Shown: positions 21,095-54,166 of the stretch, piece after piece
Layout of the letters: every line of letters begins with the position of its first letter
How positions within the stretch are numbered: the first letter of the stretch is position 1
From: Macrostomum hystrix
Lineage: Eukaryota > Animalia > Platyhelminthes
Reading direction: 5' to 3'
NCBI GenBank assembly: GCA_950097015.1
Contig: CATNEN010000008.1
Span: 4,154,001-4,218,000, forward strand
Length of the DNA stretch: 64,000 nt
Translations under genes and position numbers: made by a program
Notes under the pieces: generated by a model
Database searches by the model: none
Told to the model about the DNA's origin: nothing
The model's input: the letters and a program-made list of their open reading frames with translations, nothing else

Positions 21095-22243
21095 ATGAGC
21101 ATGTTAGTGAATATAGCAATTTTATCGTATATTCACTATTACATTGGTCGAGGTAAGACTCAATGTCCCATTATAGCTCTATTATACTGATTCATCTCTT
21201 CTGTCTGTATTAAAAATGTAATGCCAATTCGAATTCCAAATAATCTTCATGCAGGGCAAAACGTATCGTGCAACAGCTCCTTGATAGTGCCCTATGGACC
21301 ATATTCGAATTACTTCTGGACTCGCGACTATGTCGATCAACAGGTAAAAATTTCTCAATCGAAAAACGATCAACCCATTGAAGTGAGGCTTGAAGCGGCC
21401 TTGGATGGAACGCACGGATTTGTGTCATTTCGAGACAAATGGGGCTTCTATCTAACAATCTACACAAGTGGAACAAACATTGCCGCGACATTCAGAGCGA
21501 AGACCGCATTCGACTTCAACGCCGCAGCTGCAAGCTTCAATGTTGAACCATCAACAGAGTTCTGCAACCATTGGCGCATCAAGCCACTTTTGGTGCCGAA
21601 TACCCGACTAAGGCACACCAACTCTTACCTGACAGCTAGCGATTGGAATGCTGCGGATAATGTATTGGTATCCGACTCGGCCCTGTCATTCCATTGTGCA
21701 GAATGTAAGTTAAATTTATACGTAAGTAAGATAGTGCGCATAAGACCGAATAAGTTAAGGACTGTCTCAATTTTCATGCAGACAACAGCATGTGCCCATC
21801 GCAATCGCTGTTGATAAAGGACTCCACCGGCTCGATGTTGTCCTGTCAGCCTGGCAATCCGTGTGTCCTGTCAAACTCGCTGTCAGGTACAACCCTGCTC
21901 AGGGAACAAGCCGGCTTGAACGGAGATCCTGGCACCGTGTCCTTTCAGTCAGCTGACAACCCAGACTACTACCTGACTGTCTTCAGTAGCCATCTGTTGA
22001 CTGCACAGTATGTGCATTTGGAACAATCAAGCAGCACTCAATCGTTCAGAGACTGCTCAACATTCCGCTTGGCGCTGCCGGAACAGGGCCAAAACTGCAG
22101 CTGGCGACGAATTCTGGCGCCTGCCTGCGGCGGAGACAGCGTCCGAGTTCTGAGCAGGCAGACAAGCAATTATCTTGTTATCCTGTCCTGGGATCCAAAT
22201 AACTACATCACCTATTCGCTCTTTAACTTTGTCTGCCAGTCAG
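21095..22243 (+). CDS. Secreted tandem AbfB/CBM42-like beta-trefoil protein, unit A
   Basis: Exons 21095-21152 (MSMLVNIAILSYIHYYIGR, weak signal peptide), 21255-21704, 21782-22243, all phase-1 junctions. Motifs EQAGLNGDPGTVSFQSADNPDYYL and RLRH...SDSALSF. Most divergent copy; terminal exon not identified. Confidence 0.7.
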
Positions 22244-23024
22244 GTAAGTCAGTTTTTTGGTGTGCACTTTTGTGATTTCCGCGAAGCTGCACCCAGAAAG
22301 GTGAGTTGAAGTGGTAAGTAAATGCTGTAAGCTCTGTTTCATGCGCAATTTAACTGAAAACTGATCAAAACAACAAGATATTCCATTAGGTCGCATGAAT
22401 GTTGAAAATGTACCTTTCCCTTTGTTACTAAGTGTTACAATTTTCCTGAAGAACGATTTCCTTAGCACCCAGTGAAAACTGCTTCATCACAGAGCCTTTC
22501 GCACTAACAAGTACGAGCGTACCTGGTGATTTTGTTATTTTTGTCTTTTGTACGGTTGTAAAATCACCAATGCAACTCTGACGTTTTGAATTTACGATTC
22601 GAAGCTTGTATTTTTAATTGAATATCGAATGCTAAGCCTTATGACTTCGGAGTGACTTCGCTATCACATTGTACAGGGTCAACCAAAAAGTTATTTGTGT
22701 GGCGTACATGTACTATGACCACTGTACATTTTACACGCAAATTTGGTTTACACTAGTTTGTGCATTAAATTTAATTTGTATTTTTTCTACACTACTGACA
22801 TGCTAAGTAGGACGCATAACATATTTCTTACAAATGTATATTATTTGATTAAATTTAGTTTGCGTGAAACATAAGAATGAAATTAGATACATATCTCTAC
22901 ACAAGTAAGCTTTTTTCATATATTTCCAATTTAACATTAGAACTACCAATTGTGGGGGATTTGCCCCTCGGACATTTTATGTGCTGCACCCGAACGGAGA
23001 AACGCAAGCACACGGGCCAACTTT

Positions 23025-23158
23025 TTGTTGTGCATCTTCTGAACTTGTTGTGCATCTTCTGAACTTGTTGTGCATCTTCTGAACTTGTTGTGCATCTTCT
23101 GAACTTGTTTTGCATCTTCTGAACTTGTTGTGCATCTTCTGAACTTGTTGTGCATCTT
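23025..23158. repeat. Minisatellite, 20-bp unit GAACTTGTTGTGCATCTTCT
   Basis: About 7 copies, 3' of unit B. Confidence 0.9.
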
Positions 23159-23354
23159 TCGGGTGTCAACCAGGCTTTCATTTATAAACGCTGCTCAGAA
23201 CTTATGGGCAGTTGTATTTTTCAAAAGCACAAAAATACACTGACAAAGCGACAGCGGAAGAAATAATTGAAAACCTGCAGCTTACCTTTCATAAATACCT
23301 GAGTTCTTGTATCTCCAGCTTTTCTGAGACAAAAGAGTGAATGGAGAGACTCAC

Positions 23355-24502
23355 CAGCACTGCACGCAGGGCTGAACACAGTGTAGCCAGGGTATATGTA
23401 GGGATCCCACTCGATTTGGCTGATTTCGCATCCCCCGCTTTGGGTGCTCCAGTTCAGAACGGTCCCACTGACACCTGGCAGCAGCAGGCGACGGTCGCCG
23501 CAGTCGACACCCGACGCTGCGAAGGTCAGTCTCAGGGTGGCGCTGATGTTGAACGCTGAAGTGCCAGCTGATGGCATCAGCTTGAGGCACTGAGAGTCCA
23601 CGGACAGGTAGTAGCCGGGATAGTCGGAGGAGCGGAAGGACACGGAGCTCGGCAGGCTGCTCAGACCCGCCTGCTCAGTGAGCACTGTGGCGGTTGACTC
23701 TGATGCAGTCAGCTGGCACGAGCTTCCAGGTGAGCAGGACAGGTAGCTGCCACTGCCTGATCTGAGACGCAGCTGCTGAGACTGGCACAGGCGAGTGTCT
23801 GGAACGGAGCAATCGAACTCAGTATTTGCCTCATGGTTCGCGACGAGAATTAATTAGATAAGTTTTGGCCTTTTTGGAATTCTGAGTGACAATCGAACAG
23901 CGGTTCCCCATGACTCACAATCAACGCAGTGAAATGAAAGCGCCGAGTCAGAGTTCAGTAGAGAATCACTTGGATTGGGAGAGTCAGATCTCGTCAGATA
24001 AAAACTCTGGTGCCGGATGACCTGGCTCGGATACTGCACGGGACTGAGGCGCCAGTGATTGCAGAACTCTGTTGAGCGGATTCTGAAGCTGGCTGACTGC
24101 CTGAATGCGGCCGTGTTGTCTGTCCTTGACACGTAGAAACTTGTCCCAGACAGGCGAAAATAGTAGTCAGGTCTTTGAGCGTCTGCGATAGAGACGGCAC
24201 TCACCGTGCCATCAAGGGCTGCCTCCAGCCGCATCTGCAGCAGCGTGTTGCTCGTGGACTTGGAAATGAGAACTCGATTAGCCGAGTCGTAGGCGTAGAA
24301 ATAGTTAGAGTAGGGTCCATACGGTATGATCATGAAGTTGCCGCAGGTGATATTCTGGTCTGAAAGATGTGATTCGACGAGTTACAGTTCAACAGATGAT
24401 CAGGTGTCGATTATTAAATGAAATTGCATTTTTACCTGATGTTCGTGGAGCAGACAGCGCAAGACAGACTGCAGTCAGGACCAAGGGGAACAACTGCCGC
24501 AT
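23355..24502 (-). CDS. Secreted tandem AbfB/CBM42-like protein, unit B (inverted)
   Basis: Exons 24502-24436 (MRQLFPLVLTAVCLALSAPRTS), 24359-23919, 23798-23355. VSFRSSDYPGYYL...AFNISATL resembles the AbfB repeat VSFES.NYPGYYL...F..DATF. Confidence 0.75.
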
Positions 24503-25542: not shown

Positions 25543-26952
25543 ATGTTCCAGTGGGCAGAGGTTCATCTAGGCCTCCTGCTGAACTTGCATGCACTATTCG
25601 CTGTCGGATCAGGTGACAAAACTATCTGTTTTATTTTTCACCGACAATTTTAGACAGAAATCCAGAATGAATTCATTTAACGTCTTTCAGGCCAGAATAT
25701 CACCTGCGGCACCTTCATCATCATACCGTATGGACCCTACTCAAACTACTTCTACGCCTACGACTCGGCTAATCGAGTTCTCATTTCCAAGTCCACGAGC
25801 AACACGCTGCTGCAGATGCGGCTGGAGGCAGCCCTTGATGGCACGGTGAATGCCGTCTCTATCGCAGACGCTCAAAGACCTGACTACTATTTTCGCCTGT
25901 CTGGGACTAGTTTCTACGTGTCCAGGACAGACAACACGGCCGCATTCAGGCAGTCAGCCAGCTTCAGAATCCGCTCAGCAGAGTTCTGCAACCACTGGCA
26001 CATCAGTCCCGTGCAGTATCCGAGCCAGATGATCTGGCCCTATGGTTATTACCTGACGAGATCTGAATATTCCGCTGATGATTCGAGCTGGTCCGACTCA
26101 GCACTCTCCTTCTCTTGCGTCACCTGTGAGTTATGTTGAATAACTCAAAGAGTACTAAGGAAAACTCATCATTGGGAGAACCCAGCGTTCTGGCAATCAG
26201 GTTGGGCCTCAGACTGCAGGACTGGCCTCACGATACGAAAGGCGGCTAAGGTGAACCAGCGGCGACACCGCACAACTTTACGGACGTCTGGCACCAGACC
26301 GCCAGGGTAGTCGAACTTCTGACGGCGCTGAGGCTCCGTTGCCTGCCATCATTCGTCACAAAATTACACCCGTACTCACTGGGGCAGTGTAGCTCGTACT
26401 CGAACACAAGACAGGCTACTGGCATCCATAGACAGGGATCAGGGGGGATTAGAGGTTGTCTTCCCTAAGCCCAGATTACATATTAGTGGGAATTCCAAAT
26501 GGCTGTTCCAGACACTCGCCTGTGCCAGTCTCAGCAGCTGCGTCTCAGATCGGGCAGTGGCAGCTACCTGTCCTGCTCACCTGGAAGCTCGTGCCAGCTG
26601 ACTGCATCAGAGTCAACCGCCACAGTGCTCACTGAGCAGGCGGGTCTGAGCAGCCTGCCGAGCTCCGTGTCCTTCCGCTCATCCGACTATCCCGACTACT
26701 ACCTGTCCGTGGACTCTCAGTGCCTCAAGCTGATGCCATCAGCTGGCACTTCAGCGTTCAACATCAGCGCCACCCTGAGACTGACCTTCGCAGCGTCGGG
26801 TGTCGACTGCAGCGACCGTCGCCTGCTGCCAGGTGTCAGTGGGACCGTTCTGAACTGGAGCACCAAAAGCGGGGGATGCGAAATCAGCCAAATCGAGTGG
26901 GATCCCTACATATACCCTGGCTACACTGTGTTCAGCCCTGCGTGCAGTGCTG
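25543..26952 (+). CDS. Secreted tandem AbfB/CBM42-like protein, unit C
   Basis: Exons 25543-25612 (MFQWAEVHLGLLLNLHALFAVGS), 25691-26125, 26512-26952. Exon 3 and its 3' flank are nearly identical to unit B in inverted orientation. Confidence 0.75.
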
Positions 26953-27159
26953 GTGAGTCTCTCCATTCACTCTTTTGTCTCAGAAAAGCTGGAGATACAA
27001 GAACTCAGGTATTTATGAAAGGTAAGCTGCAGGTTTTTAATTATTTCTGCTGCTGTCGCCTTGTCGGTGTATTTTTGTGCTTTTGAAAAAAACAACTGCC
27101 CATACGTTCTGAGCAGCGTTTGTAAATGAAAGCCTGGTTGACACCATGACTAAATACGG

Positions 27160-29166: not shown

Positions 29167-31827
29167 TCAAACTTGAGTTGTAGTGCGAGGCGGACGGACT
29201 GGCTGACTGGCTGGCTCCATCGACTTATTGGGCAGCCCGGCAGCTCTTGGTGGCGCAGTTATTACCATGCCCGCATTCGGCCTTGCTGGAGAAGCCGATG
29301 TGCGCCTTGCTGAGTAAGTCGATGGTTTGTTTGGTAGAGAGCTCGCAGATGGGGCCGCGTACGGTTGAGTCGCAGCGTAAATTGGCGACGTTACTATCGT
29401 AACCCTTGGTGGCGAAGCTTCGGAAGGTCTCCCTCGAGAGGTTCGAGTTGGTGGTCCTGATGAAGCACTTGCAGAGTCTTGTGAAGGATAAGCTTCTGGA
29501 GGTCTCGACCTTGAGCTCTGAGCAAGCCTTGATGAAGCACTTGCAGGGTCTTGTGAAGGATTCTCTTCTGGAGGTCTCGACCTTGAGCTCTGAGCAAGCC
29601 TTGATGAGGCACTTGCAGCGTCTTGTGAAGGATAAGCTTCTGGAGGTCTCGACCTTGAGCTCTGAGCAGGCCTTGATGAGGCACTTGCAGCGTCTTGTGA
29701 AGGATAAGCTTCTGGAGTTCGTGACCGTGAGCTCTGAGCAGGCCTTGATGAAGCATTCGCCGCGTCTTGTGAAGGATAAGCTTCTGGAGGTCGCGACCTT
29801 GAGCTCTGAGCAAGCCTTGAAGAGGCACTTGCAGCGTCTTGTGACGGATAAGCTTCTGGAGGTCTCGACCTTGAGCTCTGAGCAAGCCTTGATGAGGCAC
29901 TTGCAGCGTCTTGTGAAGGATAAGCTTCTGGAGGTCTCGACCTTGAGCTCTGAGCAAGCCTTGATGAAGCACTTGCAGCGTCTTGTGAAGGATTCTCTTC
30001 TGGAGGTCTCGACCTTGAGCTCTGAGCAAGCCTTGATGAGGCACTTGCAGCGTCTTGTGAAGGATAAGCTTCTGGAGGTCGCGACCTTGAGCTCTGAGCA
30101 GGCCTTGATGAAGCATTCGCCGCGTCTTGTGAAGGATAAGCTTCTGGAGTTCGTGACCGTGAGCTCTGAGCAGGCCTTGATGAAGCATTCGCAGCGTCTT
30201 GTGAAGGATTCACTTCTGTAGGTCTCGACCTTGAGCTCTGAGCAGGCCGTGATGAAGTATTCGCAGCATCAAAAGCTGTTGAGGTCGGAGTCTGAGTAGG
30301 TCTTGCTGAGTTTTTCGCATCCTCCATTGGCGCAGCGGCTTCCGGTGATCGGGATGGCGATGCAGCTGCTAGCACTGGTCCAGAGTTTGCATGGTTTTGG
30401 GCGGGCCTTGAAGAATAACTTACTCTAGCCTTCGAAGGAGAAGCATACAGCGTTTCAGAGGCCTGTCGAGGCGCATTAGCTTCTGGTGCAAGCTGTCTGC
30501 TTACAATCGCAGCCTCTCTAAATTAGCCAAGAGAGAGGTCAGCAAGCATATTAACTAGGCCCTGAGGAAATAAAATTGCAATTTCCATAAAAATCTACAA
30601 ATTTTTTCAACGACACATTTTATACTCACATGGGCTGCCTTTGATTTGCCGAATGACTGGATGCCGAATGCCGAGCGGCTGTGCCAGAGCGATTTACACT
30701 TGCTCGGGATGACTAAAATGTTTAGACAACTAAAAATAGCTTGTTTTCTTTAGGGCTACATAAAAGCTCCACTGAGAGCAATGGAAAAACCTGATTTCCT
30801 GCCGTGGATTGGTGTTCACCGGAGGCCGGCTGAGTCGTCACAATGGCACCGTGCGGAGTGCGGGTCACTGCTTCGTCGGTAGAGGTGCCGCTGACAATGG
30901 CCTCACTGTGAAGTTGTAAAGCAGAATAATCTGACAGTCCAGGTTTCTCCACAAATGTTTAATTTATTTGACTAAATTAAGAAGTAACAAACCCGGGCTG
31001 CTTCCTTTGACTGACGCTCACAGTGCTGACCTGTACCATGTTGTCTCGAGTGGGTGCAAACTACGGAACAGGTGCAAAAACAGGGTGAGATCATTAGAGA
31101 AAGTCTGGAAAATATTGATTTTCAGGACTTCAATCACTAAAATGGTGGCACATACCTGCACCTTCCGTCGCTCCTGGTTGCTGATTGTGTAAGCGTCGAA
31201 GTAAAATTTGACAGCCGCGGCAAAGAATATCAGACCAATGACTAGCAGGATCGGTCCCGCAATCTCTCCCTTGTCTATTGTGAGCATTAGATTGTTGTGA
31301 AAGCGAAGTCCAAAGATAACGCCAGACACAATGATGAAGATTACGCCGACGATAGTCAGACAGATGGCGACCCGGTAGGGCCCCCTTCCTCTGCCGAAGT
31401 AGGGCGCCGATAGAAAGCCGCGCACCTTCTTGTCGTGATACTCCTGGTGGATGCTGGACTTGCCACTTCGCCTGCTCACTATCGAAGCCTTGGATCCGCC
31501 CAGACTAGTCGACTGCGAGTGCGTTGAATTGCTTCGTGCCCCACTCTGCATTGTGGAATTCCGACTGGCTGCGGCGACTGCGGAGCTCGGAGCATAGTAC
31601 AGCTGGCTCCGACCCGCTGAGTACACGACTGGGACGTGCCTGGTGGCATTTTGCTGGTACAGCTGCTGCTGCTGCTGTTGATGAGGTTGAGGCTGACGAC
31701 TGAGCATTGTGTTTCGACCGTGTGACTGCTGCTGCAGGGTTGACTGCTGCATCTGCTGCTGCTGCTGGATCACCACTGGCACAGTGGCATGCGAATGGTA
31801 CTGGTAGGCCTTATTAACGTAGGCCAT
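29167..31827 (-). CDS. Two-transmembrane protein with Gln-rich N-terminus and probable Ser/Arg/Pro-rich 24-aa repeat C-terminal exon
   Basis: ORF 31827-31156 ends at donor CAG|GTATGT and encodes two hydrophobic segments (VAICLTIVGVIFIIVSGVIFGL; IAGPILLVIGLIFFAAAV). Small candidate exons lie at ~31060-31031 and ~30947-30795, then an open frame from ~30515 to the stop at 29167. Linking the downstream exons is tentative; the first exon is firmer. Confidence 0.55.
29450..30250 (-). repeat. 72-bp tandem repeat (24 aa: SSRSRPPEAYPSQDAASASSRLAQ) inside an open frame
   Basis: About 11 copies with no length variation. Confidence 0.9.
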
Positions 31828-32674
31828 TATTTAGTTAGCAGAAAAATCCTACTTAATTCCAATTAGCTTTTCTATACCAACGCCTTACTCTGGCTGCAGT
31901 CTTATAGGTGAGGCTTCTTTCTTAGAATGTTTCGCAATTGAAATTGCGCCCTATCGCCTAACGCCGTTTACATTTTTTACTGCAAAATATTTTCACTGCG
32001 AAAATGGGCACAGTAATGGGCTGTGAGCTTTGCTGGCACTTGCACATTGGTCCTTGTATTGGCTGAAGTTTTACTGCCTAGTGAGTTTTTGGCCTAACTG
32101 ATAAGGATATTGCACTTGCCAACAGCAGGAAAAAAACGAGCGAGCAGCATTTTGCATAGTCATGAAGTTAGAAAAGCGAAATAGACTCGAGCTTATCTTA
32201 CCACAGATAGCAATGAAAGTTTAGAGACTTGTATTTGGGTAAATTAAATACTTCTGTTGCACATACTGGTTACTCTAAATACAACTGCTGCTGAATACAG
32301 GCGGCTCATTTCTAATAGGATTTGATTCAATAGAAAAAAATTATAGGATTTGCTCTAACTTTCCAAGTTGTCAATATTGCAGAGATATAAAATCAGGGTT
32401 ATTTGATATTTTTAATTATGAATCTTCAATCCCTCACAACCTTTATGAAAGGCCTAGTTGTAAGCCGAGCCGGTCGACGCTATCGAAATTAGAACAAAAT
32501 ATCGAAATTAGAACAAAAAGCTAAATGCGAGTACCAGAAAGTCAATATTTGCGGGTGAAAGTCTACTTCTAACTTAAAATCGATCGATAAATAATGGGGA
32601 AGAGAATAGTTTGGGCTAGACTGAAGGGGTTTAGCACAAAAGGGGCGAAAAAGTCGATAACAAATTGCGTGTAC

Positions 32675-33095: not shown

Positions 33096-33100
33096 GCCAC

Positions 33101-33445: not shown

Positions 33446-34559
33446 TAGACCCTTAGATTCTCAGCATACCCCAGTGCATGATTGACAACAGAGTTATTTA
33501 TTACCAATCGATGGTTATCTCTTGACCTTAAGTGGTCTTAATATCGAGCCTGCAGCTCCACTTGCTGTTCTTGTACAAACTAAGATATTTGCATGAGGGA
33601 TCATTGCTCATACATTTTAATATTATAGTATAGTAATATGGTACACTAATCTGCCGTACAGCAGAGCGACTTGTGAGACAGCTTCTGTCAGCTGTCAATA
33701 TGTGGTTGGTCAGCTTCTCTGCCATTGTTCTGCCCCAATCACCACCTGTGTCTGCTGTCTCATTGTCTGATTCCACCCCAAACTGGTTCTCACCTCCCAA
33801 GCTGTTCCGATTGTAAGACAAAGCGTCTACAACGGCTCACTTGGGTCAAGCGTCTCAAATGGCTGTTGCTAGGCACGCCGAAGTTCATAATGGCTACAAG
33901 CATGCAACAGAGCTTAGCATGGCCCATGCATAATTCAGTTCTTGTCCAATTAATGTCTGGGAAATGTGTTTCCCAATGCTCCATGTCTCATTCCAGTTCT
34001 GACTTATAAAAGGGTTCTTTTTAATGGTGGTTAATTGCTATATTCAAGACATGCTGCCAAGTCTTCACCTCCTTCAGCCAGAGACTGCACCAGACATGCT
34101 GCTGCGGCTTCTGCTGGCGACAGTGTGCATTGCGGGTTAGTGTTTTCCTGCTACTTTGACACATCCTCGAGATTCCGAGATTTCGAGACACTCAGCTCGT
34201 CACATGGTCGCTTTGCTGTGAAAACATTTAGAAACGAAATGGTGAGTTTGATGGTGAGTAAACCCCAATGGATTCTGGGATTCATAGAATATTTCTTGAG
34301 GGCCAGGTTTATATCTTCTAAACAACCAAATCACTCAATAAGTCAGCGCATCATCGCGTCACTTTCGGCTTTGATCAAAACGTGGATAGCAGGGTACAAA
34401 GGATGAGCATCAGGATGACTACTGACACGGTATTTTATTATTTAATTCCTATTCAATTATTCAACAATTTTCATTTAAGGTATAGTGGGCTTTCAGCCAC
34501 GTATTCGAGTTGGTGTGCTTTGAGCAACTCATGGTTGACACACCATTATCCAACTATAA

Positions 34560-36096: not shown

Positions 36097-37254
36097 ATGC
36101 CACCGCTGCTCGAGCTAGCGGTCTTAGGATTCTACTTAGTTTCCATGCAGCTCATGCATGGGCCGCAAGGTGAGACCCCTGTTGTGAGGCTTATGACAAC
36201 CGTAGAACAGCTCGTTATGTTGCTTACGATGCATGATTTTGATATTTCAGGGCAAAACATCACATGCGACACCTTCATGATGATGGCCTACGGACCAGAC
36301 TCAAACCGATTCTTCTCATACAACTCGAACTCAAGAGTGATCATCTCACAGTTGTCAACCGACTCGCCGCTGCAGATGAGGCTCGAAGCCGCACTGGATG
36401 GAACTGTCACCTGCGTGTCCTTCGCCGACGCACTCAGGCCGAATTTCTACCTGTTCATGAATGGCCAGCAGCTGCACGTGTCGCAGACTGACAATTCGAC
36501 CTCATTCCGACGAGGCGCGAGCTTCAGCATTGAGACTGCGGAGTTTTGCAATCACTGGCGCATGAGCCCGCTGCTGTATCCGGGACAGCGGCTGCGACAT
36601 GCCAGCTTCGTCCTGACCAGTTCCGACTGGACGAATGAGGCACTTTTCAGGTCCGACTCAGCGTTCTCCTTTCACTGTGTCAACTGTGAGTCTGCGTCGA
36701 ATCTATTTGCATACTGCTAATTTTTACCCATCATACTGGCCTGCCACGATTTTATGTGCCAGTGCGCTCGGTTTAAATAAAGTTCAGGTCAAAATTAATT
36801 TTTTCAGACCACCCTTTGTGCCCGAGTCGGCGGTTGCGGCTCAGATCAAGCGACAGTGGCTACATCTGGTGCCAACCTGGCGGTCTGTGTCAGCTGGTGC
36901 CGAGAGATTCGAACGCGACGGTGCTCAGAGAGCTGGCAGGGTTGAGCAGCGCACCAAACTCTGTCTCCCTTGAGTCTGCCTCTGATACTGGCTTCTTTCT
37001 GTCAGTGGACGACCAACAGTGCCTTAAATTGAGCATTAAATACCCGAATCACGCTACGTTGAACACTAGGTCCACCTTAATGTTTACTTACGCCGCATCG
37101 GGAGTCAATTGCAACAACCGTCGCCTCCTTCTACCTGATAGTAGGGCTCTTGTGGTGAATAAAAGTTTGAATTCAATGTGTCACCTCAAATCGATCGTTT
37201 GGGAGCCGAGCAGCTTCGCCAGCGATTTGGTGTTGAGTCCGGTCTATCAACCAG
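36097..37254 (+). CDS. Secreted tandem AbfB/CBM42-like protein, unit D
   Basis: Exons 36097-36169 (MPPLLELAVLGFYLVSMQLMHGPQ), 36251-36685, 36808-37254; RLRHASF...LFRSDSAF; AGLSSAPNSVSLESASDTGFFL. Confidence 0.75.
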
Positions 37255-38194: not shown

Positions 38195-39420
38195 CGAGGG
38201 CTGTCCCAAAAGTAAGTTTCGGTTATCGATAAAAGGTGAACAGTTTGAAGGAAAGTCTTAAAACTTTAACAGTAGTGAAAACTGGTCATAGTTACTCCAC
38301 AAATTTGCCGTCAAGGTCGACGCAATTTTACCAGCGCCGCACCCACGATTAAAAGGCAGCTTCGCAGCCGCCGGTTGCCAGATGCCCCAAAGCTGATGAA
38401 GCATTGTTGTTAATCTGCTCCACAGAGGCGAAGCGTTGACCGCGAAGGCTCTCCTTCATTCTGGGAAATATATAGAACTCCGCTGGAGCCAAATCAGATG
38501 AACAGCGTGGCTGTGCCAGGACCTCCCAGCTCCAGGACTCCAGGAGCTCCTCCACTCTTCTGGCGCGGTGCACAGGTGCGTTGTCGTGGTGAAAAATCAC
38601 GCCTTTCTCCAGCAAACCAGGCCGCATTTTCCTGATGGATGGCCTAAATTTTTGTTGCAGTACCCGTCGGTAATATTCTGCATTCACCTTGGTGCCGATT
38701 GGCACTGGCCAGTCCACCAGGACCTCATGGATATCAAAGAAGATGATGTGCATCACCTTCAAGGAGCTCTGCTTCCGTTGAACCTTCTAAGGACTCACTG
38801 ATCCCCTTGGAATCCACTGTGCTGACTGGCGCTTGAGCTCAGGATCCCACTCGTAGACCTCAGTCAGGAGATGAGGCACCCACTTTGCGAAGATCTTGTG
38901 CGTGTTCAGCTGCTCAGTAAGAAAGCGATGCACTGTGCTGTGAGGAATGTCCAGGAGGTCCTCGATCTCATTGCAAGTCAATCTGCTGTCAACAGTGACT
39001 GCATGTTTGACACGCTTGGCATTTGCATCAGTAGTGACTGTTATTGGCCTTTGTCTTAATCGACATCCTGCTTGAACTTCACGGACCCATTTCCGAACCG
39101 TTTGAATTGATGGACCATCTTCTTTCAGAACTTGTCCAAGCTCTTCATGAATCTCTGATGTTGATTTGCCAGCCAAAACTGAAAACTTGATGTTTCTGAC
39201 GTCGCATCTTGTGAACGAAGCCGTAGTGGCCATCTTTGCAAACAAAGCTGTGTTTAACTTGATGCCCTGCAGCTTTTGAGACTGAATTTGCTTTCAAATT
39301 TGTGGTGCTCTATGCCATGGATATATGCGAGCTAGATTCAGGAATAACGAACCGCGTTTGCCAAAAATTTGCCTAAGAAAATGCATACTAAAGCGAAACT
39401 TATTTTTGGGATAGCCCTAG
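38195..39420 (-). mobile_element. Mariner-family DNA transposon, defective
   Basis: Imperfect TIRs CGAGGGCTGTCCCAAAAGTAAGTTTCG / CGAAACTTATTTTTGGGATAGCCCTAG, right end followed by TA, length ~1.23 kb. Transposase is split (39245-38787, 38762-38349) with WVPHLL, HHDNAPVH and DLAPAEF motifs; the TGDETW (first catalytic D) segment is deleted. Confidence 0.9.
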
Positions 39421-39434
39421 TAAAGGTGGTACCT

Positions 39435-39793
39435 GGGGGTCGGTGGCAGAGCAGTCTAACGCGTTTGCCTCTCGCACCAAGGTCCCTAAGTTCGATTCCA
39501 CGGCGAGGCCACATTCATTTGGGGCGCAGCCGCGGAGAGAAGGCTTGGGGGCTTGTCGTGCAATTTACGCCCTTGTGGGCCAACCTCCAAGGCACAGTGA
39601 GAGTGTACACTGCCTGACGATGAGAAAGTCAGGGCAGATGTACACACCTGTGTGAGCGTGTGCCTGCGTACGGTATCTGTGTGCGTGTGTGCTCAGGAGT
39701 CAGCGAAATGGGCAGAATTGCCTCCTCGCTGGCTGCGGGTCTAGTGTCACCAAATTATGTGCCACTGCCCGCAGCCCTTCTGCAATTATTATT
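39435..39793 (+). mobile_element. tRNA-derived SINE, full length
   Basis: A-box TGGCAGAGCAG and B-box GTTCGATTCC in a tRNA-like head, (ATT)n tail, 12-bp target-site duplication AAGGTGGTACCT at 39423-39434 and 39794-39805. Confidence 0.85.
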
Positions 39794-40115
39794 AAGGTGG
39801 TACCTATTTTTCACTTGTTGGTACCCTTATGCTACCCTCTCGGCCAAATGTCGTAAGTTATAATCCCTTCCGCTAACGAGCATATGTGATATTCTGAGCA
39901 GTACAACAATGAACAGTTAAAGGTTGGTAAAAGCTATAAAACAAGACCGGATATAATGCGCCACCAGCCAATGGGAGTCGGACGAGCGACCAATAGGGCG
40001 CGGAGAAATCGCTGCTGCAGGTCTGATCCATTGTATTTTTTTCTAACCAAAATCTCCCAGCTTTATATTGCAGCACCAAGACGTCAAGCACTGAATGATT
40101 GGCTGCTCCCAGGCA

Positions 40116-41752
40116 ATGTCCACACTACTTCAGCTTCTGCTCATGGTGGGCCTCGCGTTCAGCCCCACTACAGTGCAATGTAAGAAAATGATAATTCATT
40201 GTAAAACAGCAATCATGCATGAAAGTCGATGTAATCAATTTGTTTAAATACTACAGGCCAGAACATCACCTGCATTAACTTTATAATCATTTTCTACGGA
40301 CCATTTTCTTACAACTTCTGGAAAATTGACGCCAATTCAAGAGTTCTTCACTCACGGTCAGCCGCCGACTCACCGCTACAGATGCGGTTGGAGGCAGCCC
40401 TTGATGGCACAGCGAACGCAGTGTCTTTTGCAGACGCACAGAGACGCGGCTACTATTTTCACCTGTCCGGTACGGCGTTGTACGTCACCCAGAATGACAA
40501 CACGATCGCTTTCAGGGAGTCAGCCAGCTTCAGAATTAGGGCGTCGGAGTTCTGCAATCACTGGCGCATCAGTCCCGTGCAGTATCCGAGCCAGGTGATC
40601 CGGCACCAGAACACTTACCTGACAAGATCCGAATGGTCCACAGATTCTCTACTACTCTCAGATTCTTCTTTATCCTTCCACTGTGTCAACTGTAAGTCAG
40701 ATTGCATACAGCAATACTTCATTGGTGCACGCTACAGATGTCTATGGACCAAAGTTATGGGGCAGTTTAGCTAGGCGGAGGGGGTCAGTGGCATTGGCAG
40801 TGGCATTGTTTGCTAAGGTTTAGAATTCTATGCAGAGCGGTCTAACACGTTTGCCTATCGCACCAAGGTCCCTGAGCTCGAATCCGCAGCGAGGCCACAT
40901 TAATTTGGGGCGCAGCAGCGGAGAGAAATTTGTCGTGCAATTTACGCCCTTGACGGGCAACCTCTAAGGCACAGTGAAAGCGCACACTGCCTAACGACGA
41001 GAAAGTCAGGGCAGATGTACACACCTGTGTGAGCATGTGCCTGCGTATGGTATCTGTGTGCGTGTGGGCTCAGGAGTCAATGAAATGGGCAGAATTGCCT
41101 CCTCGCTGGCAGCCGGTCTATTGTCACTAAACGATGTGCCATTGCTTGCAGCCCTCCTGAAATTGTTTTTATTAATAGCTAGGTAGATATATCATTTCGT
41201 GGCCATAGATATTCCAGGCCTTGATAGGTAGACACCAATATACCCCGCCAGAATAAAACCACAGCTTCGCAGTGTTTCCCACAGCTTGGGCTAGTTCTGC
41301 TCCTGTTTCAGACACCAGCATCTGCTCAGGCCAGCGACTGCTCCTGAAGGCGACAAGCAGCAACTCGTACATATCGTGCTCAGCTAATCTATCGTGTCTG
41401 CTAACGCCTTACGAATCAGAGGCAACAGTGCTCTATGATCAGGCGGGCCTGAGCAGCCTGCCGAGCTCTGTGTCCTTCCGCTCATCCGACTATCCCGGCT
41501 ACTACCTGTCCGTGGACTCTCAGTGCCTCAAGCTGATGCCATCAGCTGGCAGTTCAGCGTTCAACATCAGCGCCTCCCTGAGACTGACCTTCGCAGCGTC
41601 GGGCGTCGACTGCGGCGATCGTCGCCTCCTGCTGCCAGGGCTCAGCAGCAGCGTGCTGACTATTCCGGGCTATGGATGTGCGATCAACTCGGTCATCTGG
41701 AATTCTGAGAGCTACACTACCTACACGCAGTTTAATTTAGTCTGTTTGCCAG
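40116..41752 (+). CDS. Secreted tandem AbfB/CBM42-like protein, unit E
   Basis: Exons 40116-40179 (MSTLLQLLLMVGLAFSPTTVQ), 40257-40691, 41312-41752; SINE in intron 2. Confidence 0.75.
40780..41175 (+). mobile_element. tRNA-derived SINE copy in intron 2 of unit E
   Basis: Colinear with the 39435 copy; short insertion in the A-box; decayed TSD TAGCTAGG on both sides. Confidence 0.8.
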
Positions 41753-42737: not shown

Positions 42738-43870
42738 ATGACTGAGTTATCCCTAGCTCGGCTTAGACAACTGCTCGTTGTCTGCGTAGCGCTGACAGCA
42801 CTTGGAGTTTCAGGTGAGGCTGAATTAACTCCCTGATCCCTGGTGTCATTTACTAGAAGTACTTGAAAAGTGTCATGCTTTGTAAAATAAAACAATTATT
42901 CATTCAGGACAAAACATCACATGCGACACCTTCATGATGATGGCCTACGGACCAGACTCAAACCGATTCTTCTCATACGACTCGAACTCAAGAGTGATCA
43001 TCTCACAGTTGTCAACCGACTCGCCGCTGCAGATGAGGCTCGAAGCCGCACTGGATGGAACTTCCACCGCTGTGTCCTTCGCCGACGCACTGAGGCCGAA
43101 TTTCTACCTTTTCATGAATGGCCAGCAGCTGCACGTGTCGCAGACTGACAATTCGACCTCATTCCGACGAGGCGCAAGCTTCAGCATTGAGACTGCGGAG
43201 TTTTGCAATCACTGGCGCATCAGCCCGCTGCTGTATCCGGGACAGCGGCTGCGACATGCCAGCTTCGTCCTGACCAGTTCCGACTGGTCGAATGGGGCAC
43301 TTTTCAGGTCCGACTCAGCGTTTTCGTTTCACTGCACCGACTGTGAGTAGACCAGCAAAGCTCTTTTATCGTAGAATACGGAATAAAAAAGTGTAAAAAG
43401 CCTGCGTTCCAAAAACACCGCAGACATTCCACTCTGCCCATCGAGAAGGCTTCGCATGTTGAATGTTAAAAGCTGGACCTACCTGGTGTGCTCAACCGCG
43501 AGCTGCGATCGGACGGCAGCCGCATCGAGTGCCACGGTGTTTATTGAGCAGGCGGGCCTGAGCCGCGCGCCAAACACAATGTCCTTCCAGTCGGCCAATC
43601 AGTCAAATCAATTTCTCTACTTATCCGGTCACTGCTTCTTGTTGGCACCATCGACAGGCAATTCGGCATTCAACAGCGGCGCCAGCCTGCGACCGGCCTA
43701 CGCTGCGGCTGGCTCCGAGTGCAGCGAGCGACGCCTCCTGCTGCCAATGATCAGCGGTGCCGTGCTGGACTTCGTGGCTGGCGCCAGCTGCAGAATCACT
43801 TACGCCACCTGGAATCGAGCTACGAGTATTTACTCGAATTATCCCACTATACAACTAGAGTGTGAACCAG
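42738..43870 (+). CDS. Secreted tandem AbfB/CBM42-like protein, unit F
   Basis: Exons 42738-42813 (MTELSLARLRQLLVVCVALTALGVS), 42908-43342, 43424-43870. Confidence 0.75.
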
Positions 43871-46555: not shown

Positions 46556-47740
46556 CTCTACATGCATACAAGCATGCTGCAATCTGATTCTGATTGGAGA
46601 TAAACACTGTCCAGGGATTTCATTGGAGTCAACACTGTCCAATCAGGTAGGCACCCACCATTGTCTAAAACTACCTGTGCGTGAATCGACCTAATATTCG
46701 GTTGCTCATGTCATATTCAAGTTGCAGAATCAAAAACATATTGCTAAGGCCGTAGGCAACATCACCGGCTAAACCAAATGGCTTTTAGCATACAATCAGG
46801 TGTCTTCTTGATGCTGATGCTTTCTGAAGTGTACTCAGGTGAGAGTCCAGGATTGCTCAAAGTCAGTGCCAGATGCTTTGTCATAGATCTTGCGCGAATA
46901 ACAATGAGAAAAATAGTTTCAGAACAAAGCTTCAACTGCAGCAGCAGCTTCATCTTCATGCCGTATGGACCCTACTTAAACTACTTCTACGCCTACGACT
47001 CGGCTAATCGAGTTCTCATTTCCAAGTCCACGAGCAACACGCTGCTGCAGATGCGGCTGGAGGCAGCTCTTGATGGCACGGTGAGTGCCGTCTCTATCGC
47101 AGACGCTCAAAGACCTGACTACTATTTTCGCCTGTCTGGGACTAGTTTCTACGTGTCTAGGACAGACAACACGGCCGCATTCAGGCAGTCAGCCAGCTTC
47201 AGAATCCGCTCAGCAGAGTTTTGCAATCACTGGCGCCTCAGTCCCGTGCAGTATCCGAGCCAGGTCATCCGGCACCAGAGTTATTACCTGACGAGATCTG
47301 AATGGTCCACCAATGCCCTGCTGATGTCAGACTCGGCCGTTTCCTGTCACTGCGTCGATTGTGAGTAGACACCTGACCACTTACAGCCACTTTGTACCCA
47401 ACAAATCGACAATGAAATCTCTAATCACTATAGCTCGCATTGGCCATGGCTAAAGGACAGGTGTAGTTTTAGTTTTCCACTCAAGCGGAAATGAGAACCT
47501 GTGGCCCGTCACTGTCTGGGGATTATCGCACAAAAGACATCCTCATCTGCTGCTGATCTGCCAAATCCGGCTAGCCTCGACAATGGCATGACCTGCTTGA
47601 CTCGGATCAGGCAGACAAGGCTCAGAGAATTCTAATTAATTCCAGGAATTCATGACAGAGAAAATTTTTAATATTTCCTTTCGATATGACTGCCTTCTGA
47701 CTTGGCTCTTGTACTTTTATAACTGTGAAAGAATGTTTGC

Positions 47741-47943
47741 AATAATAATAATTGCAGAATGGCTGTGGGAAATGGCATATCATTTGGTGACACTAGACCT
47801 ACTGCCAGCGAGGAGGCAATTCTGCCCATTTCGCTGACTCCTGAGCACACACGTACTCAAATGAATGTGGCCTTACCGAGGAATCGAGCTCAGGGACCTT
47901 GGTGGGAGAGGCAAACACGTTAATCGCTCTGTCACCGACCCCC
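47741..47943 (-). mobile_element. SINE copy with internal deletion, intron 2 of unit G
   Basis: Head and tail match the full copy; the central part is missing. Confidence 0.75.
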
Positions 47944-47949
47944 GTAAGA

Positions 47950-48110
47950 TGAGTAACGAACATTAGTAACGAACATTAGTAACGAACATTAGTAACGAAC
48001 ATTAGTAACGAACATTAGTAACGAACATTAGTAACGAACATTAGTAACGAACATTAGTAACGAACATTAGTAACGAACATTAGTAACGAACATTAGTAAC
48101 GAACATTAGT
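47950..48110. repeat. 13-bp tandem repeat AGTAACGAACATT
   Basis: About 12 perfect copies adjacent to the SINE 5' end. Confidence 0.95.
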
Positions 48111-50727
48111 ACGATGAGTAGCAGCATTAGCTGATGTGAAATTTGGAAAGTGGGTATTGCGCCGGCTGCTGCTTTTCTAGCTGTAAATCTGCTTTAGTTT
48201 CTTCTTATCGACTCTATTCATTACCTGATGTCGCTTATTAATCATGCTTGGGGGGGCTAAAATGTCGTCAAGCTCATTAAATTGTTTTATGAGGCCTGAT
48301 AGATAATAAAATTATTTATTCCTTATTGTTGTTCAAGATACCTTCAGCTCAACCTTAAATGATCAGCGCCCCAGTTACAAGATTGCAATCCTCGCACCTG
48401 TTGTCAGACACTCAGCTCTGTGCAACTCGCCAGTTGCAATTGAAGACAGTCTCTGGCGCAGGTGATCATGTTTACCTGCTCTGCACACCCAATGCCACCT
48501 GTCAGCTGACGAGAGATTCATCCGGCGCCACAGTGCTCACTGAGCAGGCGGGCCTGAGCAGCCTGCCGAGCTCCGAGCTACCTGTCCGTGGACTCTCAGT
48601 GCCTCATGATGAGGCCATCAGCTGGCACTTCAGCATTCAACATCAGCGCCACCCTGAGACTCATCTTCGCAGCGTCGGGCGTCGACTGCGGCGATCGTCG
48701 CCTCCTGCTGCCGGGGTTCAGCGGCGGCGTGCTGATCTTGGACGAATCACCAACCGCTGTCTGCCATGTTCGATTGGCCAACTGGAGTCCGAGTAGCTAC
48801 TCAACTTATGCGCTGTTTAGCTTCACATGTCAGCCAGGTGAGATTAATTTGCTAAAAATTCGCGCCATCTCGACAAAGGACCCCCAGGAGTGAAAGGACG
48901 GGAAACAGCGTTTCTTAGAAACATTTTTGGAGGCCATTTTGCCGAGAAATGCACTGCGCCGATAGGACATTTTTTTAATTTTTCTGCACAACTCTAGTGA
49001 CTGTACTTTGATTTGGTAGAAGGCTCAACTTTAGATATTAGGTTTTTTATTTCCAGCTTCATGTATTTCTGTCCAGCTTCATTTGTGAAAAACAGGATTT
49101 CATACTATTTTTCCCATTTCCTCTACATGCCCTCCCCTAAGTGCCAAAATGCATTAATTTGCTCCTGAAACAACGAAACCATTTATAAAATATACGAGTA
49201 ATAGTACAAACTTTTAGGAAGCTTAGTAAAATTCGTTGCAGCAGCATGTTTGGTAAGTTACATCAAAAGAAGAGCTTCGGATCTGCTTCCGATAAAAACG
49301 ATCAATATTTTAATAAGTTTAAAAAAAATGAAAATTTCCTCTTTCTCCGCAGTGTATTTTTGGCGAAAACCAGCCTCTTAAACTTTTCTAAGAAACGATT
49401 AATCCTGTCCTTGTCGATTTTATTCAGGGATAACTTCCATCGGGTAAGAACAGAGGTGAGGATATATTTCTTAGATTACACATGCCGAGCAGTACTGCTT
49501 TTGTTTGAATGCTTGTATCTTACGTTATCAGAACTTGCATGTACTAAATAAAAAGGCCCACGAGGCAAAAAATATTTTAAAACTTTTAGAATTGCACGAC
49601 GTCTGGCCCAACTGGGTGAAGTGTCATTTCTGTTCGATGTTGCATTTTTCTCTTGATCCTTAGTCGTCGGCCGCGTCGATTCGTAGCTCGAATTTAGAAA
49701 TCAGGACTCTCCGCTTAGGGAAACCCTGTCGCTAGTTCTTTTCATGACGTCAGCTTCTATTTTTAGAAAGTCACGTGAAGTTTCTATTTTTAGAAAGACA
49801 TCAGTTTCCTTTCTAGAAAATCATCAAATTCTATTTTTAGAAAGTGACGTGATATCTCCTGCGCCCATAGATTTTCCCATGGCTATATTTCAGATCATTC
49901 AATTCCACTCTCCTCAATAGCTCAACCAGATCCATTTAGAAGGAATCCGAAAGTCACCATAAATAGCAACTTTCTAAAAACTTGCTATAATGTCTTAGAA
50001 CAGACCTCCACCACCATCTGTTGGTTAAATAAAACTGCGCGACAGCAATTTTTTGTTGTGTCCACATCCTGTGCAGAACTTCCTGTGTCCGCTCAGCATA
50101 GTGGCTGAAATGAAATCTAAGAAGGAGATCTTTTGGAAAAAAAACTTCACTTTTTTAAGCTTTACTGTGTAATATATTATGAACTGAACTAAGCACACAG
50201 GCTACAGTGAACACGCAGCTAGATGCGTATTGTGTACTGACAAATAAACTTAAGCAGTTCTAAACTGCATTCTTTGTTCTCTCTTCCGAGTGGCCCTTAG
50301 TCATTAGAAGAGTACGTTAAGCTTAAGTACCCCTAGTCAGGTATTCAGACACCCAAGGTCTCTTGTTATACTCTACTATTAAGATTACCATAAGTATGTT
50401 CAACTTTAAAATGAATGCAAGCTAAAAGCAAAAGTATTTTTACGGACTATGAATAAAAAATGTAGCAAAAAACGGATCATGTTCTAACTGCTCAGTCAGA
50501 AACTGCCCAACTAAGCAAACTGCTCACTTAGAACATTTACAAAGTGAGCAAACACACATGGCCTGAAGTTGAGAAGGACTTAGTACATTGATGCATACAC
50601 CTTGCGAGACTGCCACTTAGATCTCGCTGAAAGACACTTAATAATAGCAGGTGATTATAAATTTAATTTGTCGAAATGACTAAGAAAAGGTCAGAGTGAT
50701 TCAAATAAATGCGATGCACGAGACGGA

Positions 50728-51095: not shown

Positions 51096-51473
51096 ACCGG
51101 TTTGGGGGATTGGTTGGTGGACCAGATGGGTCGGGAGAGCACAATGCACTTTGGACGGGAAAAGGAAAGGGTGAAAAACCAAAACAAGGAATAGAGTACA
51201 GCTCACAACATATTTATATACTAACACATACCCCTTAAACATACCGAACACATATAGTAACGAGAGCATCACAATCCTCCACTTGATTAAGAATGTTTGA
51301 TCAATGATTAGTTGCTTGCCAAAAGGAATTTGCTAATCCGCTTTAAAAGACAAGCTTCATCAAGATATTACTATGCGATTAAGCAAGCTGAATTCCTGAA
51401 AAGCTTGCACATAGCCCTTGGAGGTGCGCTGTACATCCTGGGTGTACATACACTGGGTGTTGTTGGAAAAGGT

Positions 51474-51828
51474 AATAATAAAAAATAGTAATAATATCTG
51501 CTGGAGGGCTGCGAGCAAAAGCACATCATTTAGTGACACTAGACTTGCTGCCAGCGAGGAGGCAATTCTGCCCATTTCGCTGACTCCTGAGCACACACGC
51601 ACTCAGATACTGTACGCAGGCACACGCTCACACAGGTGTGTAATCTGCCCTGACTTTCTCATCGTCACTCTCGATGTGCCTGGGAGGTTGGCCCTAGAGG
51701 GCGTAAATTGCACATTAAGCCCCCAAGCCTTCTTACCGCGGCTGCGCCAGAAATGAATGTGGCGTCGCCCCGGAATCGAGCTCAGGGACCTTGGTGCGAG
51801 AGGCAAATGCGTTAGACCGCTCTGCCAC
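51474..51828 (-). mobile_element. SINE copy, near full length, upstream of unit H
   Basis: Reverse complement of head, body and (AAT)n tail. Confidence 0.8.
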
Positions 51829-52383
51829 TCATGGAAGGACAGAGCGGATTTCAAATTCCCGCTGCCTACTTCACCATGGCTCCCAAACCGATTATCGTGA
51901 AAGTCCACCATATGGATCTAAATTTTTTGCCCATGCTCTGCATTTTCATGGCGATTGGTCAAGCACTTTGGGAGATACAGAAAACTGAAAAATGTGGGTA
52001 ATTGAAATACCCCGTGGTCTCTGCTGCTAATGCATTTTTGACTTCAGTGTCTTCGTGTGCCACTAATTGAATGGGGCGTTTTATCTGTTTAGAGCGTGAA
52101 ATGGGGAAATTTCTGGGTGAAATTAAGCCTGGCATCACTATACCTAACATCCAATCGGAACTGGTCCCGACTCAGAATCTCGAACAGATTGCAAATTCTG
52201 TACAACATTAAAACCAATCAAGACCATCTCAAGGATTCCAAGAATCAGGAAAAATGAAATTTGCTCCGCCATCCAAGCCTGCTCAGCAAAGTTGCCTCCT
52301 AGTCATGTGAGTACTGCTGATGAAGCCGGCTGTATTAAAGGTAATCTCAGTCATTCAATCACTCAACTAATTTCTTTGCACAG

Positions 52384-54166
52384 GTCAAACCAGCTGCGAC
52401 ACCTTCATGATCATGGCCTATGGAGCTTACTCAAACCGATTCTTCTCATACAACTCGAACTCAAGAGTGATCATCTCACAGTTGTCAACCGACTCGCCGC
52501 TGCAGATGAGGCTCGAAGCCGCACTGGATGGAACTGTCACCTGCGTGTCCTTCACAGATGCGCTCAGGCCGAATTTCTACCTGTTCATGAATGGCCAGCA
52601 GCTGTACGTGTCGCAGACTGACAATTCGACCTCATTCCGACGAGGCGCGAGCTTCAGCATTGAGACTGCGGAGTTTTGCAATCACTGGCGCATCAGCCCG
52701 CTGCTGTATCCGGGACAGCGGCTGCGACATGCCAGCTTCGTCCTGACCAGTTCCGACTGGACGAATGAGGCACTTTTCAGGTCCGACTCAGCGTTTTCGT
52801 TTCACTGCACCGACTGTGAGTAGATCATTCGAATTGTCGTAGTTCAGTAATTGAGTAATCAACAAATCTGAGTAAGATTTTATGAGTTGGAAATCTCGGA
52901 AAAACTGGGATTTACAAGGACGCATTGCTTCTTGTTCCAGATAGACTGGGATTTACAAGGCCGCATTGCTTCTTGTTCCAAAAAGACTGGGATTTACAAG
53001 GCCGCATTGCTTCTTGTTCCAGATAGACTGGGATTTACAAGGCCGCATTGCTTCTTGTTCCAGATAGACTGGGATTTACAAGGCCGCATTGCTTCTTGTT
53101 CCAAAAAGACTGGGATTTACAAGGCCGCATTGCTTCTTGTTCCAAAAAGATTGGGATTTACAAGGCCGAATTGCTTCTTGTTCCAAAAAGACTGGGATTT
53201 ACAAGGCCGCATTGCTTCTTGTTCCAAAAAGATTGGGATTTACAAGGCCGAATTGCTTCTTGTTCCAGATAGACTGGGATTTACAAGGCCGCATTGCTTC
53301 TTGTTCCAGATAGACTGGGATTTACAAGGCCGCATTGCTTCTTGTTCCAGATAGACTGGGATTTACAAGGCCGCATTGCTTCTTGTTCCAAAAAGACTGG
53401 GATTTACAAGGCCGCATTGCTTCTTGTTCCAAAAAGATTGGGATTTACAAGGCCGAATTGCTTCTTGTTCCAGATAGACTGGGATTTACAAGGCCGCATT
53501 GCTTCTTGTTCCAGATAGACTGGGATTTACAAGGCCGCATTGCTTCTTGTTCCAGATAGACTGGGATTTACAAGGCCGCATTGCTTCTTGTTCCAAAAAG
53601 ACTGGGATTTACAAGGCCGCATTGCTTCTTGTTCCAGATAGACTGGGATTTACAAGGCCGCATTGCTTCTTGTTCCAGATAGACTGGGATTTACAAGGCC
53701 GCATTGCTTCTTGTTCCAGACAGCAAGTTATGGCCATCGCGACTGCTTCGTCTCCAGGATGCCTTCAGTGAGAAATTCCTGGCCTGTCCACTCTTGGGTT
53801 CTTGCACTTTACAGGCGGGCTACCAGAACGGCACATTGCTCACTGAGCAGGCGGGCCTGAGCAGCCTGCCGAGCTCCGTGTCCTTCCGCTCCTCCGACTA
53901 TCCCGGCTACTACCTGTCCGTAGACTCTCAGTGCCTCAAGCTGATGCCATCAGCTGGCACTTCAGCGTTCAACATCAGCGCCACCCTGAGACTGACCTTC
54001 GCAGCGTCGGGTGTCGACTGCGGCGACCGTCGCCTCCTGCTGCCGGGGTTAAACGACAGCGTGCTAAGCTACAGGGCCGGAGCGATCAATTGCGAAATCC
54101 AATCAACTGCCTGGACAGCCAGCTATAAGCCTGAATCCGACAAGTTTAGGCCAGTTTGTCTAACAG
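52384..54166 (+). pseudogene. Tandem AbfB/CBM42-like unit H; both domain exons open but no intact signal exon
   Basis: Exons 52384-52815 and 53720-54166 are open and in phase. A donor at 52307 lies the usual ~77 nt upstream but is preceded by an in-frame TAG with no in-frame ATG. The conserved LCP/LCQ Cys is Trp here. Could be a pseudogene or an internal module. Confidence 0.5.
52904..53719. repeat. 41-bp minisatellite containing the splice acceptor of unit H exon 3, ~20 copies
   Basis: Unit CTGGGATTTACAAGGCCGCATTGCTTCTTGTTCCAGATAGA. Confidence 0.95.

Follow-up and report, generated by a model that had tools for sequence, protein, structure and literature searches.

A Macrostomum-lineage variant of the tandem-AbfB architecture: a gene cluster that probably encodes lectin-like secreted proteins

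Relationship of the cluster to known AbfB proteins

AbfB/CBM42 domains are present in GH43 and GH54 arabinofuranosidases (PDB 3kmv, 9nxh, 3akf, and 1wd3) and, in human, exclusively in matrix proteins (PMC4224354). Otogelin/OTOGL are animal proteins with extracellular AbfB, but the domain lies inside large VWD-type matrix proteins. The first-pass annotation of the locus studied here took otogelin to be the main setting of animal AbfB; this does not hold, because secreted stand-alone proteins with two to four AbfB domains are known from Hydra (XP_002159690 and XP_002167824), Hydractinia (XP_057315557), and Clavelina (CAK8691440), four-domain forms occur in Hydra and Clavelina, and Clytia possesses tandem-AbfB proteins. 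For two Hydra AbfB transcripts, enrichment in the basal disc, which is adhesive, has been reported (PMC5080974), and XP_002159690 falls in the cluster of match P0004. The Hydra PPOD (PMC3531485) is a functional analogue, being a secreted, lineage-restricted, and lectin-like protein with two tandem β-trefoils, but its trefoil is Fascin/FRG1-like with six similar repeats and is not AbfB. The literature searched gave no ligand for the AbfB domain of any animal protein, the Hydra basal-disc proteins and otogelin included.

The window (the whole 64-kb stretch of Macrostomum hystrix DNA that was analyzed) contains eight units, U1 to U8, each planned as a leader exon and two domain exons, D1 and then D2. 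Like the hydrozoan and tunicate proteins, the units encode a leader and only AbfB domains, with a putative tail exon, and this plan is shared by a Hydractinia protein of 303 aa. The architecture is therefore not new. However, the hydrozoan and tunicate proteins generally keep His/Asp in the β and γ pockets of each domain, have few cysteines, and carry near-equivalent domains, whereas D1 and D2 of the window are strongly differentiated, and the identity between the two sets is about 20 to 25%. Quick trees placed them on a separate branch and did not indicate shared descent as whole proteins. The CBM42 domains of GH43 and GH54 enzymes share the fold and detectable sequence homology with the window domains (identity about 20%), but the window proteins have no catalytic domain, are cysteine-rich, and have lost the canonical D1 β pocket and all canonical D2 pockets.

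The nearest tree group was the AbfB-AbfB-carbonic anhydrase proteins of Macrostomum lignano (A0A1I8HD97 and PAA56185; P0003 and P0112). All 15 window domains grouped with these modules with an SH-aLRT of 98 (89 in another quick tree), although long branches could pull the two together. The M. lignano protein likewise has a leader and two cysteine-flanked AbfB modules, with the β His lost, the γ His/Asp kept, and an ALDGT-type turn in domain 1; it differs in its carbonic anhydrase domain, an identity of about 15 to 26%, and fewer domain-2 cysteines. A search space of about 15 billion proteins contained no close relative of the subfamily. Neither U4 D1 nor U2 D2 gave a match in word-index protein searches, and a full HMMER search with a D1 profile gave nothing at E ≤ 1e-30; its 88 matches were mostly generic AbfB proteins and a few apparently low-complexity ones (e.g., P0015), and otogelin was missing from the named matches. 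Scanning prokaryote genomes and metagenomes with DNA patterns likewise detected no relative, so a recent bacterial transfer is not supported. Literature searches combining AbfB with Macrostomum or flatworms yielded nothing beyond papers that mention Hydra AbfB and papers on other subjects. The proposal of a new family is partly supported: the subfamily does look undescribed and lineage-restricted.

Exon structure and fold of the eight units

A tblastn search of the window placed all eight annotated units, and a profile search across the six reading frames added no ninth domain pair (Table 1). U2 lies on the minus strand and the remaining seven on the plus strand. Each of the 16 domain exons is bounded by AG and GT and has phase 1-1; the lengths are 143 to 149 aa for D1 and 146 to 153 aa for D2. 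In agreement with the annotated count of seven intact signal exons, hydropathy revealed, in seven units, a hydrophobic leader exon that starts at an ATG and has a phase-1 donor; at U8, there was neither read-through nor a readable leader exon upstream of D1. These features fit the proposed tandem expansion of free-standing proteins with a secretion signal, whose exons would be spliced as the anatomy suggests. Six units (U1-U6) are apparently intact and fully open, with canonical splice sites. By contrast, although all eight domain pairs are present as annotated, a 29-nt deletion at about 48578 breaks the frame of U7 D2, and the second donor is also gone; U7 is a probable pseudogene. An unrelated minus-strand gene (29170-31830) splits the array, an orphan leader exon occurs at 34096, and 0.6 to 1.1 kb of non-repeat DNA separates several units.

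Table 1 Features of the double-AbfB units (positions in the window)
Feature	Position	Strand	Basis
U1 leader, signal-peptide-like, phase-1 donor; weaker leader	21095..21152	+	hydropathy
U1 D1, most divergent D1; γ His/Asp retained	21255..21704	+	
U1 D2	21782..22243	+	
U2 leader	24436..24502	-	hydropathy
U2 D1	23919..24359	-	
U2 D2, β-trefoil by model	23355..23798	-	
U2 putative tail mini-exon: 11 codons, stop, then strong donor	23286..23323	-	splice signals only
U3 leader	25543..25612	+	hydropathy
U3 D1; Pro in place of γ His	25691..26125	+	
U3 D2; 99% identity with U2 D2	26512..26952	+	
U3 putative tail mini-exon	26984..27021	+	inferred
U4 leader	36097..36169	+	hydropathy
U4 D1; type common to U6 and U8; additional Cys	36251..36685	+	
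U4 D2; final Cys missing; no Pfam match, fits D2 profile	36808..37254	+	
U5 leader; other possible ATG at 40095	40116..40179	+	hydropathy
U5 D1	40257..40691	+	
U5 D2	41312..41752	+	
U6 leader	42738..42813	+	hydropathy
U6 D1, β-trefoil by model	42908..43342	+	
U6 D2	43424..43870	+	
U7 leader	46778..46838	+	hydropathy
U7 D1	46923..47360	+	
U7 D2; 29-nt deletion, frame broken, second donor lost	48408..48837	+	
U8 D1; additional Cys; leader exon unreadable upstream	52384..52815	+	
U8 D2; first Cys missing	53720..54166	+	
Homogenized D2 core, about 210 nt, U8 copy	53829..54047	+	
Homogenized D2 core, other copies	U2 23474-23692; U3 26618-26829; U5 41425-41657; U7 48526-48733		

Neither a glycosidase-like nor any other domain-sized coding exon was found downstream of any D2, which bears out the annotated lack of a catalytic domain and separates the genes from the GH43/GH54 type, with its catalytic domain in the same gene. 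The annotated plan of leader, D1, and D2 is present, but the genes appear to run further. A GT donor closes each D2 (8/8), and in seven units a second donor, G/GTRAG, follows 55 to 114 nt beyond D2 (chance about 1e-7, for a window picked post hoc). This conserved extra donor suggests a short tail exon, absent from the first-pass annotation, for which most units have an available stop.

Pfam AbfB (PF05270) was the top match for 13 of the 15 domain ORFs tested; 11 reached the curated cut-off (22.8 bits), two fell below it, and two had no match. Profile matches in the PDB at E < 0.001 were exclusively to CBM42. U6 D1 and U2 D2, modeled as single domains, gave pLDDT values of 94 and 89, and their best structural matches were CBM42 (TM about 0.8; Z 19, versus 16 for other trefoils); the modeling alignments were rich in canonical AbfB rows, which biases these models toward the AbfB fold. 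An alignment-free Atlas search also ranked AbfB first, with a weak signal. The window domains gave no PPOD-type or Fascin/FRG1 Pfam match, and fascin ranked well below CBM42 among structures similar to the window model. Pfam, PDB profiles, and models thus agree in supporting the proposed identity of both D1 and D2 as AbfB/CBM42-type β-trefoils. The VSFxSxxYPxYYL repeat, described earlier as three-fold in each domain, was not: VSFxS..YL..ATF was detectable in two subdomains of D1, the middle and the last, and in the middle one alone of D2. What is three-fold is the structure, not a sequence motif.

Sugar pockets, cysteines, and divergence of the copies

We mapped the pocket residues of a reference CBM42, H70/Y73/D89 and H118/N120/Y121/D136 (PMC12493170), onto the window domains by alignment. 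The arabinose-binding His and Asp of the γ pocket are kept in seven of the eight D1 domains, U3 being the exception with Pro for His. The β pocket of D1 lacks His/Tyr/Asp in all eight, and D2 lacks the canonical His/Asp at β, γ, and all other pocket positions, so that canonical residues are missing from five of the six possible pockets. Because the pair survives only in D1 γ, the proposed glycan binding is plausible for this pocket, a probable sugar site as predicted by alignment, and not for D1 β or D2. Exactly ten cysteines occur across D1 and D2 in all seven in-frame units, with an odd number in D1 in five of them, which probably corresponds to about five disulfides, at least one of them between domains.

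Between old pairs, dN/dS was 0.1 to 0.25 for D1, and it was below 1 in all computable pairs; D2 values were higher (0.2-0.65), and no subdomain tested exceeded 1. The copies are old and under purifying selection, with synonymous sites saturated. Identity in the D2 core tracts was 95 to 98% inside versus 44 to 52% outside (p ≤ 0.0005), and the copies are patchworked by exon-internal gene conversion. Since conversion homogenizes the central subdomains, the copies differ mainly in their outer subdomains; the α subdomain is the most variable among all eight D1. In the D1 of U2, U3, and U7, divergence was concentrated at the His/Asp subdomain (pS 0.38-0.56 and pN 0.14-0.30), whereas U4, U6, and U8 showed no such concentration. 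Because pS climbs alongside pN, this pattern does not demonstrate positive selection; it marks the end of a conversion tract. The history appears to be that of a phase 1-1 exon module that was amplified, differentiated into two kinds of domain, and shuffled by conversion.

Possible roles of the encoded proteins

We give a little better than an even chance to the cluster being a Macrostomum-lineage tandem family of independent genes for secreted, lectin-like double-AbfB proteins. Each gene would yield a secreted protein of about 320 to 340 aa, probably N-glycosylated, made of the leader, two AbfB/CBM42-fold β-trefoils, and a very short tail, and carrying about five disulfides. It would have no enzyme activity and would most likely act as a lectin-like binder in a secretion, whether of mucus, surface coat, or gut. 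The D1 γ His/Asp pair, used for arabinofuranose, would form its one probable sugar site, and D2, its canonical pockets lost, may serve as a scaffold, pair in a dimer, or bind some other ligand. The old copies would have diverged under purifying selection, with conversion inside exons homogenizing the central subdomains and coupling D1 types to different D2 types.

A possible but somewhat unlikely alternative is a structural cross-linker of an adhesive or surface coat, which would bind self glycans, such as sulfated glycosaminoglycans, via new surfaces in the manner of Hydra PPOD. The loss of most canonical pockets would suit this role, as would the basal-disc enrichment of Hydra AbfB-only proteins (PMC5080974) and the agglutination of cells by PPODs, which heparin and chondroitin block (PMC3531485). 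However, the D1 γ His/Asp is kept despite synonymous saturation, and the literature searched contains no link between AbfB and Macrostomum adhesion.

Under a further, unlikely reading, the bacterial/fungal-type furanose pocket would sense non-self glycans of algal food, fungi, or biofilm, with conversion providing a small repertoire of constant core and variable surface. Arabinofuranose is not known as an animal sugar, so its binding, if true, would point to recognition of food or microbes. 

For now, the cluster counts among the many lectin-like, secreted clusters that are specific to a lineage. Its products are small and single-purpose, with one predicted pocket and, in U3, a naturally occurring loss of the His, and the worm genus is tractable to RNAi, so the question of the animal AbfB ligand becomes testable.

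It is doubtful that the CBM42 fold serves as a disulfide-stabilized scaffold of a non-lectin secreted protein, such as a seminal-fluid, gland, or protein-binding trefoil. The lineage-restricted tandem expansion without a close homolog and the pocketless D2 with its higher dN/dS are consistent with this, and cytokines and protease inhibitors, which also appeared in the structural match lists, are β-trefoils too; but the γ residues are retained in seven of the eight D1, and dN/dS exceeds 1 in no subdomain tested.

The 1-1 phase of every exon allows the donor of one D2 to join the D1 acceptor of a later unit, and U4 to U8 on the plus strand could partly form one transcription unit giving four-domain or mixed proteins. 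Such proteins have precedents in the four-AbfB proteins of Hydra and Clavelina, all junctions are frame-compatible, and the arrangement would rescue U8, whose domain exons are intact and constrained yet leaderless. We consider it very unlikely, however, as seven of the units carry a leader exon and ATG of their own, a putative tail mini-exon offers a stop in most, U2 runs in the opposite direction, and the array is broken by another gene. Most improbable is that the units are mostly decaying duplicates without present function, since the U7 frameshift, the U8 leader loss, the U3 His loss, and the orphan leader exon stand against six fully open units with canonical splice sites, a cysteine count that does not vary, and dN/dS values far under 1 even though synonymous sites are saturated.

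Layout of the cluster

The window is animal DNA, with introns filled with minisatellites. A tblastn search with the domain ORFs recovered eight pairs of first and second domain exons (D1 and D2) between 21255 and 54166, in agreement with the eight gene units (U1–U8) of the first-pass annotation, and profiles of D1 and D2 found no further copies in the window. All units lie on the plus strand except U2, and every domain exon has AG/GT ends and phase 1-1. An ATG-started hydrophobic leader exon of 19 to 25 codons with a phase-1 donor was confirmed for seven units, as annotated; no leader exon reading through was found for U8. The frame of U7 D2 is broken by a 29-nt deletion, and the six units U1–U6 look intact from their sequence.

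A splice donor at the end of D2 in all units, together with a second strong donor 55–114 nt downstream of D2 in seven of the eight, implies a tail mini-exon, which the annotated plan of signal exon, D1 and D2, sound for those exons, had overlooked. The predicted mini-exon of U2 and U3 reaches a stop after 11 codons; in the remaining units, its acceptor is ambiguous and short stops are available. No domain-sized exon was found downstream of D2, which bears out the claim that no catalytic domain is attached. The stretch shared by U2 and U3 spans D2, the tail mini-exon, and ~190 bp beyond it. The orphan leader-like exon, with a TATA-like element near 34005, precedes U4 D1 by 2 kb, with a 7-bp minisatellite in between, and may be an alternative first exon of U4 or what remains of a ninth unit.

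Features in and around the cluster (window coordinates)
Feature	Position	Strand	Remarks
Flanking genes	3186-18147 and 56784-63439	-	GH47 mannosidase-like (EDEM-like), RhoGEF-PH-SH3, SPRY + RING exons
Inverted U2/U3 pair, head-to-head	23162-23805 and 26505-27145		644 bp shared at 97.5%
Unrelated gene within cluster	29170-31830	-	Gln-rich start; two hydrophobic stretches
Orphan leader-like exon	34051-34135	+	ATG at 34051 or 34096; strongly hydrophobic; phase-1 donor
Mariner/Mos1-type transposase remnant	38100-39300	-	Between U4 and U5; weak HTH_48 match
Dispersed ~350-bp repeat, four copies	39443-39794, 40832-41171, 47743-47943, 51489-51828		80-90% identical
U8 D1-D2 intron	52904-53720		41-bp minisatellite; last copy supplies D2 splice acceptor

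The flanking genes carry private minisatellites in many introns. The unrelated gene, which matches no Pfam family, contains eleven repeats of 72 bp, rich in Ser/Arg/Pro, in one long exon. The dispersed repeat is SINE-like, and ARAGORN found no tRNA in its copies; U5 and U7 each carry one copy in the intron between D1 and D2.

Domain identity and putative sugar pockets

Pfam AbfB was the top match for 13 of 15 domain ORFs, and at E<0.001 the D1 and D2 profiles matched only CBM42-containing chains in the PDB. Predicted structures of U6 D1 and U2 D2 were confident (pLDDT 94 and 89) and best matched CBM42 structures, depending partly on the profile evidence because the modelling alignments held canonical AbfB rows. 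An alignment-free Atlas search agreed weakly. The annotated identity of D1 and D2 as AbfB/CBM42 domains is nearly certain. The canonical repeat motif was detectable in one D2 and two D1 subdomains; therefore, the three-fold repeat ascribed to each domain holds for the fold, not for the sequence.

In AtAbf43C, H70/Y73/D89 serve the beta pocket, whereas H118/N120/Y121/D136 serve the gamma pocket (PMC12493170). Alignment to these positions showed that no D1 keeps either the beta His or the beta Asp, that seven of eight D1 keep the gamma His and Asp (Pro replaces His in U3), and that D2 has neither His nor Asp at the pocket positions. Each protein would thus have at most one canonical sugar site.

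Exon mosaicism and cysteines

Synonymous changes are close to saturation in the old pairs, where dN/dS is ~0.1-0.25 in D1 and 0.2-0.65 in D2. A 210-nt D2 core is 95-98% identical among U2, U3, U5, and U8, against 44-52% in the flanks (p<=0.0005), and the U7 core is of this type save for its deletion. Similarly, U2, U3, and U7 share 95-97% identity over ~340 nt of D1, against 55-67% outside (p<=0.0005). The D1 exons of U4, U6, and U8 are 94-96% identical, the similarity stopping at the exon borders, and their D2 exons are very different. Judged from the sequences, this patchy identity is exon-internal gene conversion, which yields mosaic D1/D2 pairs. At the diverged ends pN < pS, which does not demonstrate positive selection.

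D1 and D2 together contain exactly ten cysteines in all seven in-frame units, split 3+7 in five and 4+6 in U4 and U8. D2 has lost its last cysteine in U4 and its first in U8; both share an extra D1 cysteine missing from U6 despite its D1 identity. These offsetting changes, in two cases, suggest that D1 and D2 form a single protein with inter-domain disulfides.

Relatives and proposed function

Searches with spliced models, run exon by exon, found no close relative among representatives of ~15 billion proteins (best E 5e-25). Among the best matches are microbial AbfB proteins and, from Clavelina, Hydra, Hydractinia, and Clytia, stand-alone proteins with tandem AbfB domains; Hydractinia XP_057315557 (303 aa, leader plus two AbfB) has the same plan as the units. 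In Hydra, two transcripts for AbfB proteins (310 and 588 aa) are enriched in the basal disc (PMC5080974). Since these hydrozoan and tunicate proteins are in the databases, the architecture is already known, and the proposed new family stands only as a lineage-specific one; the cluster is real, and is a lineage-specific version of that architecture. No biochemical characterisation of the stand-alone tandem architecture was found in the literature searched.

On balance, we favour the reading that each gene encodes a secreted, disulfide-stapled, non-catalytic protein, in which the D1 gamma pocket would bind a glycan and D2 may serve as scaffold, dimeriser, or binder of something else. A protein that cross-links the coat or glue of the worm itself, resembling the secreted double beta-trefoil PPOD family of Hydra, is a possible but unlikely alternative. 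A gland protein that is not a lectin seems less probable still, splicing across several units is improbable, and decay of the copies is the most doubtful explanation.

In quick trees, subject to a long-branch caveat, the window's domains fall together with AbfB modules, flanked by cysteines, from a Macrostomum carbonic anhydrase (SH-aLRT 89 and 98); these are their nearest AbfB modules and have likewise lost the beta His. The carbonic anhydrase-AbfB fusion was checked in M. lignano. A transcript-like contig (L001, 105-2003) codes for a leader, two AbfB domains, and carbonic anhydrase (P0003), and its AbfB part shows 64% identity to a M. lignano protein.
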